Source: Hyalangium minutum (GTDB taxonomy: Bacteria; Myxococcota; Myxococcia; Myxococcales; Myxococcaceae). From it: 64,000 bases of DNA. The translations under genes were made by a program, and so were the position numbers. The notes beneath the pieces were generated by a model. That model searched no databases and was not told the origin of the DNA. It saw only the letters and a list, made by a program, of their open reading frames with translations. This document shows, one piece after another, positions 7,830 through 16,880 of the stretch. The stretch lies in NCBI RefSeq assembly GCF_000737315.1, contig NZ_JMCB01000013.1, forward strand, positions 414,919-478,918. Direction: 5' to 3'. Position 1 is the first letter of the stretch, and every line of letters begins with the position of its first letter.

Positions 7830-8816
7830 TCATCGGTCGCCCTGAAAAAAAGAATCCCCATCGATAGGGGCAAGCTCCAGCGGAAGACCGAAGAGCGGGA
7901 AGAGCGCCTGGGTGTCCAGGAACGAGTTCATGGCGGCGATCCGGTCACCCTCGAGCTCCAGCACGATGAGCGCCCACGCCTGGTGGCGGCCCCCGGGGAC
8001 ACTGGGCGGCCGGTACTGGCCGAAGGCGGGCGAGCCGCAGGCCGAGGTGGGGATCAGCCTGGACCCGCGGCAGCCTGAGCCTCTCCCCAACAGCCAGTCC
8101 CGAATCGGCTGGTGGCCCTGGAGCCACAGCGCGTAGGGCGGCATCGACAAGGTTGCTTCCTGGTGGAGCAGCGTGGTGAGTGCGTCCACGTCGTACCGCT
8201 CGAAGGCCTCGACGTAGCGGTTCACCAGTGTGGCCTGCGAGTCGGACAACGGCGCGCGGGACTGGGTGAGGTCGCGAGTGGAGAGCGTCGCCCGGGCCCG
8301 CTGGAGCGCGCTGTTGACCGCAGCGACCGACATCTCGAGGCTGTCGGCGGCCTCAGCGGCGGACCAGCCGAGGACCTCGGTCAGGAGCAGCACCGCGCGC
8401 TGCCGGGGAGGGAGGTGCTGGAGCGCCGCCACGAACGCGAGGCGGATGCTCTGGCGCAGCATCACGAGCTCGGACGGATCGGCGTCCGAAGGCAGGGCTC
8501 TCGCATCGGGGATGGGCTCAATCCAGTGAGAGCCGGGCAGGGAGGTGAGCGTGTCCTCGACGGTGCCGACGGGGCCGAGCTCCATGGGGCGTACCCGCCG
8601 CGAGCGGTCATTCAGCGCGTCCAGGCACACGCGCGTGGCAATGCTGTAGAGCCAGGTGCGCATGGAAGAGCGCTCCTCGAAGCGGTCGAGGTTGCGCCAG
8701 GCCCGGACCAGGGTCTCCTGAACGGCGTCATCGGCTTCGGCAGCCGAGCCCAGCATGCGGTAGCAGTGGCCGGTCAGCGCGGCGCGGTGTTCCTCGAAGG
8801 ATGCGGCGGTAGCCAT
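7830..8816 (-). CDS. ECF sigma factor with a C-terminal SnoaL-like extension (SigG/ECF56-like)
   Basis: Region 2 ([15 protein letters not shown]), WIEPIPD linker, region 4 ([11 protein letters not shown]) and an NTF2/SnoaL tail. Start taken at [10 protein letters not shown]. Confidence 0.88.
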
Positions 8817-8958
8817 CGCGCTGAGATCTATCAGGTCCCACCTCTTGAGTAGGGACATTGAGGAGGGACAGAGCAGCTCGGCTGCCTGCCTGGCGGGGCA
8901 GCAGCGGGTGGGACTTCCACCCCTACCGTCCACCAAGGAGACGTCCCATCGTTTGGCC

Positions 8959-10134
8959 ATGGCCTCCGCTCAAGTAGCCCGTCGTGTGTTCATCGGGCTC
9001 ATCCTCCTGTCCATCGCCCTGGTGTTGCTGATTATCTCGCCTTTCTTCGAGGCGTTCTTCCTGGCAGCGGTGCTGGCCGGAGCGTTTCACGGGCTGCAGA
9101 AGCGGCTGACGCGGCGGCTGCGAGGGCGAAGCGGACTGTCGGCGGGACTCATCTGCGTGGGCTTCGTCCTGGCGCTGCTGGTGCCGCTGGCCGCGCTGAC
9201 GACCTTCCTGGTGTCTCAGATCCTCGAAGGGGTGAACTTCATCAACAACCTGGTGCAGCAGCGGGGGTTGGCGGGGCTGCTGACGTACGTCCCTGGCCCC
9301 TTCAAGGACTCCGCGGCGCGGATGCTCGAGAGCTTCCAGTCAAACAGCGCGGGGATGTGGGCGACGCTGCAGGCGCATCTGAGCTCCCGCGGAGCGGTGG
9401 CGGCGCAGACGGTGGGCGGACTGGTGGCGGCGACGGGCTCGCTGATCTTCCAGACGGTGATGATGCTCATCGCGCTCTACTTCCTGCTGGTCGACGGCAG
9501 CCGGCTCGTGGAGTGGATGGAGAGCGTGTCGCCGCTTAAGCGAGGCCAGACAACGGAGCTGCTGTTGGAGTTCCGCAGCGTCACGCGCTCGGTGCTGGTG
9601 TCTACCTTGGCCACGGCGGGCGTGCAGGCGGTGGCGGCGCTGGCGGGCTACCTCATCACCGGGGTGCCTGTGCCCATCTTCTTCGCGGCGGTCACGTTCT
9701 TCTTCGCGCTCATTCCGGCGGTGGGAGCCGCGACGGTGTGCGTGGCCGCAGCGCTGCTGTTGCTGGCCACGGGCCATCCGGTGGGGGCCGTCTTCCTGGC
9801 GGCCTGGGGCATCATCGTGGTGGGCCTCTCGGACAACGTCATCAAGCCGCTGCTCGTGAGGCGCGGCCTGCATATGCACGGCGCCCTCATCTTCTTCGCG
9901 CTGCTGGGAGGCCTGGCGGTCTTCGGTCCGATCGGCCTGCTGCTGGGGCCGCTCTGTGTGGCCTTCTTCCTGTCCGTGCTGCGCATCTACGAGCGCGATT
10001 TCGGGCGGCCCTCGCCCCGTCCGGGGGATCCGGCGACTCCGCCGCTGAACCCGCCCACGGTGGGGGAGGGCGAGGAGTGGGAGCCCTCGGGGCTCCACCT
10101 GGATGAGGACTCGCGGGATCGGCACCCCCACTGA
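8959..10134 (+). CDS. AI-2E family (PerM/YhhT-like) transporter
   Basis: Multiple TM segments. Motifs SDNVIKPLL and [10 protein letters not shown]. Confidence 0.9.
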
Positions 10135-11027: not shown

Positions 11028-13133
<2,106 letters not shown>

Positions 13134-13376
13134 AAAGGTTTCCCGATCCCGCCGGGTAGAGCCACCCGCGGGTCCAAAGACAGACACTGGTTGATAAGGA
13201 ATGGCGCCGCGGACAGACGGGTGCGCACACGGGGGGCCAGAGAGCGGCCCTCAGCAGGGCGCACTCAGGTCAGCGCGAGGACACACGAAGTCCGAGACCG
13301 ATCAGAGGCGGAACCGAGCCCGCTCGGCGCACGGGAACCAGCCAACCCGCGAGCCAGGGGACACCGGTCCGCCTGA

Positions 13377-13481
13377 TCAAATGTCGAGCAGCACCTTGTT
13401 GCGGGAGCCGAGACGCACGTCAGCCATCGGCGCGAGCACGCGCACGGACGGCACACCCAGGATGGTGGAGACGGGCCTCAT
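13377..13481 (-). CDS. Candidate 34-aa leader peptide upstream of the EF-G paralog (absent from the ORF track)
   Basis: MRPVSTILGVPSVRVLAPMADVRLGSRNKVLLDI*. 29 of the 33 non-start codons end in G/C. It begins 9 nt after a -10 box. Confidence 0.55.
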   Translation of the reverse strand: MRPVSTILGVPSVRVLAPMADVRLGSRNKVLLDI

Positions 13482-13490
13482 GACCCAGTC

Positions 13491-13518
13491 ATATTAAACA
13501 CGCGTCTGTATTTGTCAA
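13491..13518 (-). promoter_or_regulatory. Sigma70-type promoter for the leader/fusA transcript
   Basis: Minus strand TTGACA (13518-13513), 16-nt spacer, TAATAT (13496-13491). The -35 overlaps the bestrophin stop codon. Confidence 0.65.
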
Positions 13519-14399
13519 TCGGGCCTGGCGGTCTCGGAAGGCAGCAGCGCCAGGAGGTTGGCCTGGATGACGCCACAGATGCGATCGAGCGGCAGATCGT
13601 TCTCGTCGGTGCCGAAGGGATCCTCGATCTCCACGCCGATCTCCTCGATGCCGAAGAAGACATAGGAGAGGAAGAAGGTGGCCACCACCGCGCCCCAGCC
13701 GAAGCTCTCCACCAGCGCGAACGGCAGCGAGCCGCAGTAGATGACGAGCGCGCGGCGCAGGTGCACCATGTATGCGAAGGGCATGGGCGTCTTGTGGATG
13801 CGCTCGCACCCGCCCAGGTAGTCGATGAGTTGCTGGACGTTCTGATCCAGCGCCATCTGCGTGTACTCGTTGTAGTGGCCCCGGCGGCGGCCTTCGGAAA
13901 GGGCCTCGCTCATCCGTTGGGACACCGCGAGCGCAACGTGTTGGGCAGTGCCCGCCTGCCGCACCTCCTCTGGTGGGAGCTGGGCGGTGACCGGGCCGAG
14001 GTCCTTGTCACCTCGCAGCCCCGAGGCCGCGGCATAGGGGAACACCACGGTCCACTGCACGAGCGTCCGGTAGAGCGCCGGGTCTCGCTCGCGGAGGAAG
14101 ACGCTCGAGGCGCGCGCCAGGTTACGCGTCTCGTTGACGATGCCGCCCCAGAGCTTCCGGCCCTCCCAGAAGCGGTCATAGGAGGAGTTGGTCCGGAACA
14201 CCAGCAGCAGGCCGAGCGCCACGCCCACCAGGCCATGCATGATGTTGGGGATGCCGATAGGCTGGACGTGGTGGTGGAAGGCCACGACCCCTGTCGCCCA
14301 CAGGGTGACGACAAGCAGCCGTCCGACGATTTCGCGGACCATCGACCCCTTCAGGTCGAAGAAGTGATGTCCCCACTGATGCGGATCGTAGTCAATCAT
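13515..14399 (-). CDS. Bestrophin family (YneE-like) ion channel
   Basis: FRTNSSYDRFWEGR and IEEIGVEIEDPFG motifs. Confidence 0.92.
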   Translation of the reverse strand: MIDYDPHQWGHHFFDLKGSMVREIVGRLLVVTLWATGVVAFHHHVQPIGIPNIMHGLVGVALGLLLVFRTNSSYDRFWEGRKLWGGIVNETRNLARASSVFLRERDPALYRTLVQWTVVFPYAAASGLRGDKDLGPVTAQLPPEEVRQAGTAQHVALAVSQRMSEALSEGRRRGHYNEYTQMALDQNVQQLIDYLGGCERIHKTPMPFAYMVHLRRALVIYCGSLPFALVESFGWGAVVATFFLSYVFFGIEEIGVEIEDPFGTDENDLPLDRICGVIQANLLALLPSETARPD

Positions 14400-14451: not shown

Positions 14452-15836
14452 CTACGTTACGCGTTCAATTCGGAGCTTGCGTCCCTTGACGCGGCCCTCG
14501 CGAAGCCGCTGGAGCGCCATGCGCGCGGTGCGCTTGGAGACGGCCACGTAGGACAGGCGATCCTGGATCTCGATCTTGCCGACCTCGGAGGCGTTCAGCC
14601 CTCCGGCCTCTCCTGTCAGCGCGCCGAGGATGTCCCCCGGCCTCATCTTGTCCTTGCGCCCAGAGAAGATCAGGAGCGTCTCCCAGGCTGCTTCGAGTGA
14701 GGCTCCTCGGCCAGGCCCCTCCGGCGGCAGGTCCTCCAGGCCTCCGGGAGTCAGCTTCACACCGGTGGCTTGCTCGATGGCCTCGACCTTGCGCTCGTCT
14801 CGGGAAGTGACGAGGGAGATGGCAAGGCCCGTTCTCCCCGCCCGCCCGGTGCGGCCGATGCGGTGGACATAGGGCTCGGGCTGGAAGGGGAGATCGAAGT
14901 TGATGACCGCATCCAAGGCCTCGACGTCAATGCCGCGACCCGCGACATCCGTGGCGATGAGGATCCGGGTGCTGTGATTGCGGAACGTCGCCATGACCCG
15001 GTCTCGCTCGCTCTGCTCCAGGTCTCCCTGGAGCCCGTCCACGCTCACGCCAGACTCGCGGAGGACCTGCGTCAGCTCGACGACCGTCGCCTTGTGGTTG
15101 CAGAAGACGATACCGGAGGCCGGCTGGTACTTCCGCAGGATGCGCAGCAGGAGCGCTGGCTTCTCGTGGGGCTCGCACGTGTACCGGAGTTGCTGGATGT
15201 CGGGAGGCGCGGTGGCCTCCGCGACCGTCACGCGCGTGGGTTTCTTCTGGAAGGTGCGGCTCAGCGCCTCGATTTCCGGGGGAAACGTGGCAGAGAAGAG
15301 CACGGTCTGCCGCGCCGCAGGGGTAGCCCCGAGGATGCGCTCGATGTCCTCCCGGAAGCCCATGTCGAGCATCCGGTCGGCTTCATCGAGCACCACGGTG
15401 GCGAGCTGGCGTGTCTCGAGCGCCTCCCGGTCGAGGATGTCCAGGACGCGGCCCGGGGTGCCCACCGCGATGTGGGCCCCCTTCTCGAGCGCGTCCAGCT
15501 GCGGCCGGATGGGCTGGCCTCCCGCGAGAATGAGCACCTGGAGCCCGTGCAATCTCCGGCCGAGCCGGCGGATCTCTCCGGCCACTTGTGCGCAGAGCTC
15601 CCGAGTCGGGCAGAGCACGAGCGCGTGGACTCGCCGCTGCTGGAGCTGAACCTTCTGCAGGATCGGAAGGGCGAAGGCCGCCGTCTTCCCGCTGCCCGTC
15701 TGGGCTTGGCCGATGAGGTCACGCCCCTGGAGCAACACCGGAATGCTCTGGGCCTGGATGGGCGTGACGGCTTGGAACTCCAGCTCTTCGAGAACCTGAA
15801 GCAGCGGAGGGGAGAGTGAGAGTTCAGCGAAGGTCA

Positions 15837-15837
<1 letters not shown>
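14452..15837 (-). CDS. dbpA: ATP-dependent 23S rRNA helicase DbpA
   Basis: Q motif, GSGKT, PTRELC, DEAD, SAT and HRIGRTGR, plus the C-terminal GRKDKMRPGDILGAL RNA-binding domain. Confidence 0.93.

Positions 15838-16880
<1,043 letters not shown>

Follow-up and report, generated by a model that had tools for sequence, protein, structure and literature searches.

Ribosome-mediated transcription attenuators of translation and resistance genes are known from trpL, ermC, cat, the leader of tet(M) in Tn916, vmlR and other ABC-F genes, hflXr of Listeria and the upstream open reading frame (uORF) of mycobacterial whiB7. One of the genes controlled in this way encodes TetM, a GTPase that resembles elongation factor G (EF-G). 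In the tnaC-tnaA operon of E. coli, a ribosome that stalls on the stop codon of the leader keeps Rho from acting, and the Rho utilization (rut) site abuts that stop. The stalling of TnaC has been described (PMC8429421), and leaderless attenuators with very short open reading frames, the polycysteine short open reading frames (sORFs), have been described in mycobacteria (bioRxiv 10.1101/834739). Second copies of the EF-G gene have also been described: Pseudomonas aeruginosa carries two EFG I copies that differ in activity and in their sensitivity to fusidic acid (PMC3832671). The present analysis concerns a 64,000-nt stretch of Hyalangium minutum DNA (contig NZ_JMCB01000013.1, positions 414,919 to 478,918; the window, below) and, within it, the promoter, 34-codon open reading frame (ORF) and long 5' leader that precede a stand-alone fusA gene encoding an EF-G paralog.

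Promoter, ORF and leader are conserved as one unit, more than expected by chance, and a conserved cis-regulatory leader whose reading frame is maintained has good support. Together the promoter and the ~350-nt 5' leader are read here, with a probability of roughly 0.6, as a cis-acting, translation-sensing regulatory leader of the EF-G paralog; the specific signal and the direction of control are held with less confidence than that. The locus is like the leader-peptide attenuators in that a short ORF stands in a long 5' leader, helices overlap both this ORF and the ribosome footprint, and the regulated gene encodes a factor that acts on the ribosome. It is unlike them in that the window clade has neither a demonstrable intrinsic terminator nor an alternative pairing that depends on ribosome position, in that the ORF has no Shine-Dalgarno sequence and would begin ~3 nt from the predicted 5' end, and in that the gene encodes an EFG I-type factor and not a known resistance determinant. 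As in tnaC-tnaA, the leader stop would be the critical position, and it is followed by a long untranslated spacer that has no intrinsic terminator and contains a C-rich tract; unlike in tnaC-tnaA, a G-rich 24-bp stem-loop comes directly after the stop, the C-rich tract lies ~130-230 nt further on, and no ligand is known. With the mycobacterial polycysteine sORFs the locus shares a very short ORF at or near the predicted 5' end of the transcript, ahead of genes, that would serve as a translation sensor, but it belongs to the Myxococcota, its ORF has no run of a single amino acid, and its leaderless status is deduced from promoter geometry only.

Like the EF-G1A/EF-G1B pair of P. aeruginosa (PMC3832671), the paralog is a second EFG I-type gene situated away from the rpsL-rpsG-fusA-tuf operon, and a division of labor between translocation and recycling is plausible for it. 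The available parts of the two reports on duplicated EFG I genes (PMC3832671, PMC3150367) mention no leader ORF, and the myxobacterial paralog differs in its altered domain IV loops. The leader is best filed with the ribosome-sensing leader-ORF regulators, among which its architecture would be unusual: the ORF would be near-leaderless, its stop codon is enclosed in a hairpin and followed 3 nt later by a 24-bp stem, and a terminator is lacking. Because the terminator, a defining feature of attenuators, was not found, the leader is better said to work like an attenuator than to be a full member of that class. Little is understood of how bacteria regulate paralogs of their elongation factors, and the literature searched contained no case of an EF-G gene controlled by a leader ORF. 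Searches of the literature on myxobacterial EF-G paralogs, EF-G leader peptides, fusA2, argyrin self-resistance and transcription starts in M. xanthus returned no description of this leader, and the element is apparently previously undescribed. The features of the locus are collected in Table 1.

Table 1. Positions of the promoter, leader and gene features in the window; (-) denotes the reverse strand.
Feature	Position	Strand	Details
-35 hexamer	13518..13513	(-)	TTGACA; invariant in the 23 loci having promoter sequence
-10 hexamer	13496..13491	(-)	TAATAT; 16-nt spacer after the -35 hexamer
Leader ORF	13481..13377	(-)	34 codons plus TGA; ATG 13481..13479, TGA 13379..13377; without Shine-Dalgarno sequence
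Hairpin H0	13411..13478	(-)	ORF codons 2-4, AGGCCCGUC (13478..13470), with codons ~21-24, GACGUGCGUCU (13421..13411)
Hairpin H1	13374..13390	(-)	UGCUCGA-CAU-UUGAUCA; contains the TGA stop
Leader between ORF and fusA	13376..13134	(-)	243 nt
Long stem-loop	13307..13373	(-)	starts 3 nt past the stop; base GGCGGA/UCCGCC; apical loop UUGGCUGGUU (13345..13336)
Conserved box	13271..13289	(-)	UUCGUGUGUCCUCGCGCUG (consensus UUCGUGUGUCCUC(A/G)CGC); small hairpin with UCCU loop
C-rich, G-poor tract	13175..13221	(-)	contains the AACCAG box, 13192..13186
Pre-Shine-Dalgarno hairpin	13148..13172	(-)	CCCGCGGGU-GGCUCU-ACCCGGCGGG
Shine-Dalgarno region of the EF-G paralog	13139..13145	(-)	CGGGAAA; GGGAG or GGGAA in orthologs
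EF-G paralog coding sequence	11028..13133	(-)	ATG at 13133; 701 aa

The conserved unit and its leader ORF

A protein scan with the window EF-G, run against one genome per species, returned 18 orthologous loci at 73-92% identity, from the genera Hyalangium, Archangium, Cystobacter, Myxococcus, Corallococcus, Pyxidicoccus and Citreicoccus; its other matches, at ~55% identity, were canonical EF-Gs with rpsG upstream. Loci from Vitiosangium, M. stipitatus and C. macrosporus were added through protein searches and contig look-ups, as were two deeper lineages, a soil metagenome contig (66% identity) and the Myxococcota metagenome-assembled genome JACRCW01 (62%). A metagenome scan with a DNA pattern that combined the end of the ORF with GGCGGA returned 8 matches, of which 2 were real; one of these two was a duplicate, and the scan contributed one Cystobacter-like contig. 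The module counts given below cover the 24 orthologous loci with sufficient upstream sequence, the deepest lineages in the alignment being L081 and L083. The module of promoter, ORF, leader and fusA is present in all 24, across the Archangiaceae, the Myxococcaceae and two deeper Myxococcota lineages and over a range of 62-92% protein identity. DNA homology among the loci begins exactly at the TTGACA box, and the genes flanking the module vary from locus to locus (bestrophin, cyclic nucleotide-binding, lectin and others).

An earlier note made from the window sequence alone had described a TTGACA-16-TAATAT promoter, an unannotated near-leaderless ORF of 34 codons beginning 9 nt past the -10 box, a gene-like G+C count at third codon positions (GC3) of 29/33, and about 240 nt of leader before fusA. 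The promoter is present to the base (13518..13491), as is the ORF; the GC3 count is reproduced when the ATG is left out, and the note's boundary at 13134 is the last base of a leader that measures 243 nt. Only the description of the ORF as unannotated needs qualification: it is true for the most part, but one public gene call, in Corallococcus macrosporus (L098, 773-955), covers the ORF as a 60-aa hypothetical protein whose predicted start is a GTG on the far side of the promoter.

The promoter matches 10 of 12 sigma-70-like positions and is the sole such site on either strand between 12500 and 14500, where shuffled sequences give 0.3. The distance of 9 nt between the -10 box and the ATG is the same at all loci, that from the -35 box to the ATG is 37-38 nt throughout, and the seventh base downstream of the -10 box is a purine everywhere except in L081. 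Transcription is predicted to start at this purine, at ~13484, which would leave a 5' untranslated region (UTR) of ~3 nt and make the ORF near-leaderless. The ORF lies between the only promoter-like site and fusA, with which it would share a transcript. A Shine-Dalgarno sequence could not fit before the ATG, where the promoter itself takes up the sequence. In the window, the bestrophin-family gene upstream (13515..14399) ends within the -35 hexamer, which contains its TGA stop; the upstream gene differs in other genomes.

The peptide encoded in the window is MRPVSTILGVPSVRVLAPMADVRLGSRNKVLLDI. Its ORF has G+C contents of 0.70/0.45/0.88 at codon positions 1, 2 and 3, and the difference between GC3 and GC2, 0.42, lies within the distribution for coding frames (0.48 +/- 0.09) and not within that for off-frame reading (-0.24 +/- 0.14). 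Over the 24 lineages the means are 0.74/0.48/0.83, position 2 being the lowest in each lineage; the leader, at 0.70/0.71/0.72, shows no such periodicity, whereas fusA gives 0.72/0.44/0.92. This ORF is the only one common to all 24 leaders; any other start-stop pair is common to 5 at most. Its span in the orthologs is 102, 105 or 108 nt (33-35 codons), and the four distinct gaps in the ORF alignment, of 3, 6, 6 and 9 nt, are all multiples of three, as against 13 of the 62 gaps in the leader (p ~0.002 at the leader rate). Gap density is ~6 times higher in the leader than in the ORF, even though no other part of the region varies as much as the middle of the ORF. Both the AUG and the position of the stop are fixed across loci, and the stop is always UGA with an acidic residue at position -2. 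Since the frame is maintained, the ORF is probably translated, with a peptide sequence that appears largely free.

Conservation within the peptide is confined to M-R-P-V at its start, A-P-x-A-D-V in its middle and R-x-x-V-L-L-(D/E)-(I/F/Y)-stop at its end. Near the C-terminus, the codons for Val, Arg and Asp show only synonymous or conservative variation, and purely synonymous variation outside helices is limited to those for Val (GUG, GUU, GUC) and Arg (CGC, CGU). A selenocysteine insertion sequence (SECIS), or another form of read-through of the UGA, was considered and rejected: no frame is conserved past the UGA, the read-through frames end at non-homologous places, and the indels of the leader are mostly not multiples of three.

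RNA structure and the possible output step

To analyze the structure of the leader, RNAalifold was run on an alignment of the 24 sequences (A1), and base pairs were counted explicitly in it. The fold of the single window sequence is not significantly stable (z = -1.6), and the structural claims made here rest on comparative evidence only. Taken as a whole, the structure has 96.5% of its cells paired and 14 pairs with changes on both sides, as against 5.6 in shuffled alignments. Hairpin H0, which joins the beginning of the ORF to codons in its last half, comprises 9 pairs that are 96% paired; three of these pairs are changed on both sides, including a U-A to C-G change in two separate lineages, and these double changes alter the encoded residues on both sides. 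Hairpin H1 has 6-7 bp and the general form UGCUCGA-NNN-UUGA(G/U)CA, with CAU, UAU, AUU or AUA in its loop. The stem of H1 is essentially invariant, so that covariation speaks neither for nor against it.

The 24 pairs of the long stem-loop beyond the stop are 91.9% paired, and 11 of them are changed on both sides, whereas shuffling gave 4.4 +/- 1.5 and none of 500 shuffles reached as high a count; the covariation score is 0.244, compared with at most 0.104 when the partners are slid. Its predicted energy ranges from -28 to -60 kcal/mol over the 24 leaders, and its apical loop is near-invariant across loci. This loop shares the 7-mer GUUGGCU with helix 43 of 23S rRNA (the L11/EF-G GTPase-associated center), perhaps by coincidence. 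A likeness of the leader to the sarcin-ricin loop or to the GTPase-associated center of 23S rRNA that had been noticed by eye was dropped, as it is not conserved in the orthologs.

Further downstream, the small hairpin of the conserved box has 5 pairs, two of them changed on both sides, and is absent from L081 and L083. In the C-rich tract, the best 60-nt window has a C content of ~0.45 and a G content of 0.15-0.25. The AACCAG box within this tract is complementary to CUGGUU of the apical loop, and the 7 pairs so formed are 96% paired, with a U-A to C-G change in L081 and L083; the two elements form a candidate long-range pairing. The pre-Shine-Dalgarno hairpin has 9 pairs, with a change on both sides of the apical pair in 8 sequences, and in L081 and L083 its stems are entirely different yet still complementary. 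Rfam returned no match at the gathering threshold in the window or in 6 related loci. A sul1 match below that threshold on the pre-Shine-Dalgarno hairpin (13137-13178, 23.1 bits against a gathering cutoff of 36.2, E = 0.08) was judged to be due to chance. An alignment of the regions upstream of myxobacterial fusA paralogs, which the earlier note had proposed as a way of finding both covarying hairpins and a conserved peptide, did yield covarying hairpins, but amino acid-level conservation of the peptide proved weak.

Several results weigh against the interpretation of this region as a translation-sensing leader. No excess of synonymous change was found in the ORF frame, where amino acid changes per codon change amount to 0.72, compared with 0.69 and 0.68 in the other two frames, and pairwise differences are equal over the three codon positions (0.26/0.23/0.25). 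Selection at the amino acid level over the whole peptide was rejected on these grounds, the synonymous share being that of the other frames and the codon positions equally divergent. Frame +2 is likewise open in 22 of the 24 loci, and openness alone therefore means little as evidence. The conserved peptide segments (MRPV, ADV and LLDI-stop) coincide with H0 and H1 and so provide no independent evidence for a functional peptide; constraint at the RNA level can explain them. The structures were, moreover, derived from the same sequences that were used for pair counting.

The search for an output step adds to these points. A consensus scan of the leader found no intrinsic terminator consisting of a hairpin and a U-tract. 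A candidate hairpin ending before the UUCGUGUGU box ranked at about the 16th percentile of positions, and the minimum free energy of its segment was like that of shuffled sequences (z = -0.45). Two terminator models that depend on masking by a terminating ribosome were not supported: pairing of the 3' side of the long stem-loop with the variable region had a probability of ~0, and pairing of UCCGCC with the variable region had one of 0.33, against 0.30 in shuffled sequences. Both candidate terminator hairpins were no better than controls, and no conserved alternative pairing dependent on ribosome position beat the controls either. Occlusion of the Shine-Dalgarno region according to occupancy of the ORF found no support either, since masking the ORF in partition-function folding leaves accessibility much the same (0.45 vs 0.43 and 0.49). 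Candidates for the output are termination by Rho in the C-rich tract, which pairing between the apical loop and the AACCAG box may modulate, a non-canonical terminator, and effects on RNA stability or translation.

The sister clade and the competing readings

A second clade of stand-alone EF-G genes (P0054, P0108 and P0121) is 76-80% identical among its members and ~60% identical to the window protein. Its leaders (L084:2607-3000, L086:1119-1500 and L099:1-333) contain an ORF whose C-terminal half, (C/S)VI(T/S)ELI(V/L)A..RGAGL-stop, differs mostly by synonymous or conservative changes, and the coding signature of this ORF is clear in the sequences. The last five codons and the stop (CGCGGAGC.GGCCUC UAA) are predicted to form, together with GAGGCC.GCUCCGCG, an antiterminator of -29 to -36 kcal/mol in which one pair has changed in a compensatory manner (GGCC/GGCC to GGUC/GACC). 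The 3' strand of this antiterminator doubles as the 5' arm of a terminator hairpin of -17 to -22 kcal/mol that is followed by U4-U5: UUUUU in two of the leaders, and UUUU and then a second UUUU in L086. The hairpin lies 53-57 nt past the stop and 146-173 nt ahead of fusA; a simple scan misses it because of an internal mismatch. With its full set of antiterminator, terminator and U run, the sister-clade leader reads as a textbook leader-peptide attenuator. A ribosome at the end of the ORF would mask the antiterminator strand and allow the terminator to form, and a ribosome held earlier would leave this strand free and permit read-through. The motif CCGGCUCCGC is common to the 5' arm of the sister terminator and to the 3' strand at the base of the window-clade stem-loop, which suggests a common origin of the two leaders. 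Two natural designs can be set side by side, a canonical one with a terminator in the sister clade and a near-leaderless one without a terminator in the window clade. A cobalamin riboswitch (RF00174, 104.8 bits) was found downstream of the sister-clade EF-G gene at L086:3817-4019; it is unrelated to the leader.

Leader-peptide control of the paralog, as put forward in the earlier note, is favored by the conserved unit, the indels in multiples of three, the fixed ATG and stop, the periodicity in GC content and the sister attenuator, but neither a terminator nor a Shine-Dalgarno switch was demonstrated. In the mechanism proposed, a ribosome would load onto the nascent 5' end without a Shine-Dalgarno sequence, on a transcript that starts ~3 nt before the AUG. 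In translating the ORF it would have to melt H0 and the stop-codon hairpin H1, and once the UGA is in the A site, its footprint and mRNA channel would cover the GGCGGA 5' strand of the long stem-loop. Since the ribosome would thus open H0 and H1 and cover the base of the stem, the fold of the first 190 nt would depend on its presence, position and dwell time. The position and dwell of the lead ribosome would be set by elongation speed, termination and recycling, and the fold of the leader would set the amount of full-length or translatable fusA mRNA. The more likely direction, by analogy with the sister clade, is that slow or stalled translation in the body of the ORF turns the EF-G paralog on. 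The opposite direction is possible in the window clade, because a defect in recycling would hold the base of the stem open.

If such a leader operates as proposed, it would show predatory bacteria of antibiotic-rich soils sensing the state of their own ribosomes and deploying a spare translocase or recycling factor. It would also add to the evidence for functional near-leaderless short ORFs beyond the Actinobacteria, and the module offers a compact reporter for compounds that target EF-G or the ribosome. The suggestion of the earlier note that the gene is induced by EF-G-targeting antibiotics agrees with the data, although nothing in them points to it, and is best regarded as unsupported speculation.

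The competing explanation that fares best takes the leader to be a purely RNA-based regulatory or stabilizing 5' UTR that may bind a protein or ligand, for example the EF-G paralog itself in an autogenous circuit or a ribosomal protein, and takes the ORF to be incidental. H0, H1 and the long stem-loop account for most of the conservation in and past the ORF, and the near-invariant apical loop, the want of a synonymous excess and the failure of ribosome masking to yield either a terminator or a Shine-Dalgarno switch are all as such an element would have them. This explanation does not tell, however, why the most variable stretch of the region tolerates indels in multiples of three only, why gene-like GC periodicity is found in all lineages, or why an AUG at a fixed distance from the promoter and the position of the stop should both be invariant. 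The leader matches no Rfam family, and use of a translated leader peptide is clear in the sister clade. An RNA-only element is considered unlikely, though it deserves to be kept in mind.

A more specific form of the translation-sensing leader would make it a direct gauge of EF-G activity. A lead ribosome that had loaded without a Shine-Dalgarno sequence would have to force its way through H1 and the GC-rich base of the stem and would then need recycling by ribosome recycling factor (RRF) and EF-G, so that its dwell at the stop hairpin and stem would measure the capacity of the cell for translocation and recycling and would bring a back-up EF-G into play. A core elongation factor would then be under homeostatic control, which might also respond to antibiotics, through a paralog with altered decoding-center loops; the proposal is tentative and, in this specific form, rather improbable.

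It is doubtful that the leader encodes an arrest peptide, in which the nascent C-terminal motif would stall the terminating ribosome in the manner of TnaC and would block Rho or open the stem-loop when EF-G, RRF or a release factor is inhibited. In each of the 24 loci the motif is either unchanged or altered only conservatively; its Val and Arg codons vary synonymously, and the stop is always UGA after an acidic residue. The stem-loop begins within the footprint of a terminating ribosome, and a C-rich tract lies downstream. The codons for LL-(D/E) and the stop are, however, the invariant stem of H1, and the variable C-terminal residues fall in its loop; constraints on the RNA therefore predict the pattern of the arrest motif too. 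Independent substitutions are few, and the sequence directly past the stop is G-rich and not rut-like.

That the ORF encodes a functional 34-aa small protein, co-expressed with EF-G and without a regulatory role, is very improbable: the ORF is conserved with a gene-like composition and one public gene call spans it (L098), but the peptide is under essentially no constraint over the middle two thirds of its length, there is no protein-family match, and a structured gap of 243 nt before fusA speaks against a simple operon partner. Equally hard to credit is an ordinary long 5' UTR that regulates nothing and is conserved through recent common ancestry, for although the nearest relatives are 82-85% identical in DNA, the module is retained at EF-G identities down to 62% amid completely different flanking genes, several helices carry compensatory changes, and the frame of the ORF is strictly preserved.

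The EF-G paralog and its neighborhood

The product of the gene behind the leader scores 947 bits against TIGR00484 (cutoff 659), which identifies it as of the EFG I type, and its best matches in the PDB are the EF-Gs of T. thermophilus and E. coli. A longer, GTG-started version of the gene from 13187 was discarded, as the orthologs give it no support. The GTPase motifs are intact, with the P-loop, DTPGH and switch I conserved, and the helix contacted by fusidic acid, GELHLEI(V/I)VDR, is canonical. The paralog is ~55-61% identical to the canonical Myxococcota EF-Gs with which it was compared; these have S7 upstream, and the paralog stands outside the rpsL-rpsG-fusA-tuf operon. The tip loops of domain IV reach the decoding center. 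In both stand-alone clades these loops (residues ~505-520 and ~575-590) are altered with respect to the canonical Myxococcota EF-Gs, from GG(H/R)GQ(Y/F)GH to GG(P/V/L)GQ(Y/F)A(R/H/Y/Q/V) in the first loop and from GS(Y/F)HEVDSS to x(T/A/F)Hx(R/K)DS(T/S) in the second; for the EF-G paralog the changes read GQYGH to GQYA(R/H) and GSYHEVDSS to (D/S)THV(R/K)DST. Margus et al. (PMC3150367) describe delta-proteobacterial EFGs that are ambiguous between EFG I and the recycling-type spdEFG2. Given the altered tip loops and the precedents of that report and of the two P. aeruginosa copies (PMC3832671), a specialized or back-up role for the paralog is plausible. M. xanthus encodes an ortholog of the paralog at 75% identity (P0025). 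The fusA gene MXAN_4082 of this species, which may be that ortholog, is listed as differentially expressed in a pxr mutant (PMC11928866).

In the window, the paralog is preceded on the same strand by the bestrophin-family gene and, before that, by a gene for a DbpA helicase, and a convergent gene for a 2OG-Fe dioxygenase lies downstream. A DEAD-box RNA helicase is encoded near the paralog both here and elsewhere: DbpA is encoded two genes upstream in the window (14452-15840, reverse strand), and a helicase gene lies immediately downstream of the paralog in M. stipitatus (L096:3567-4482) and C. macrosporus (L098:3660-4509). The two genes, both ribosome-related, may be in loose synteny. The reverse strand of the window also encodes, at a distance of a few kb from the paralog, an extracytoplasmic function (ECF)-type sigma factor with a C-terminal SnoaL-like domain (7830-8960).

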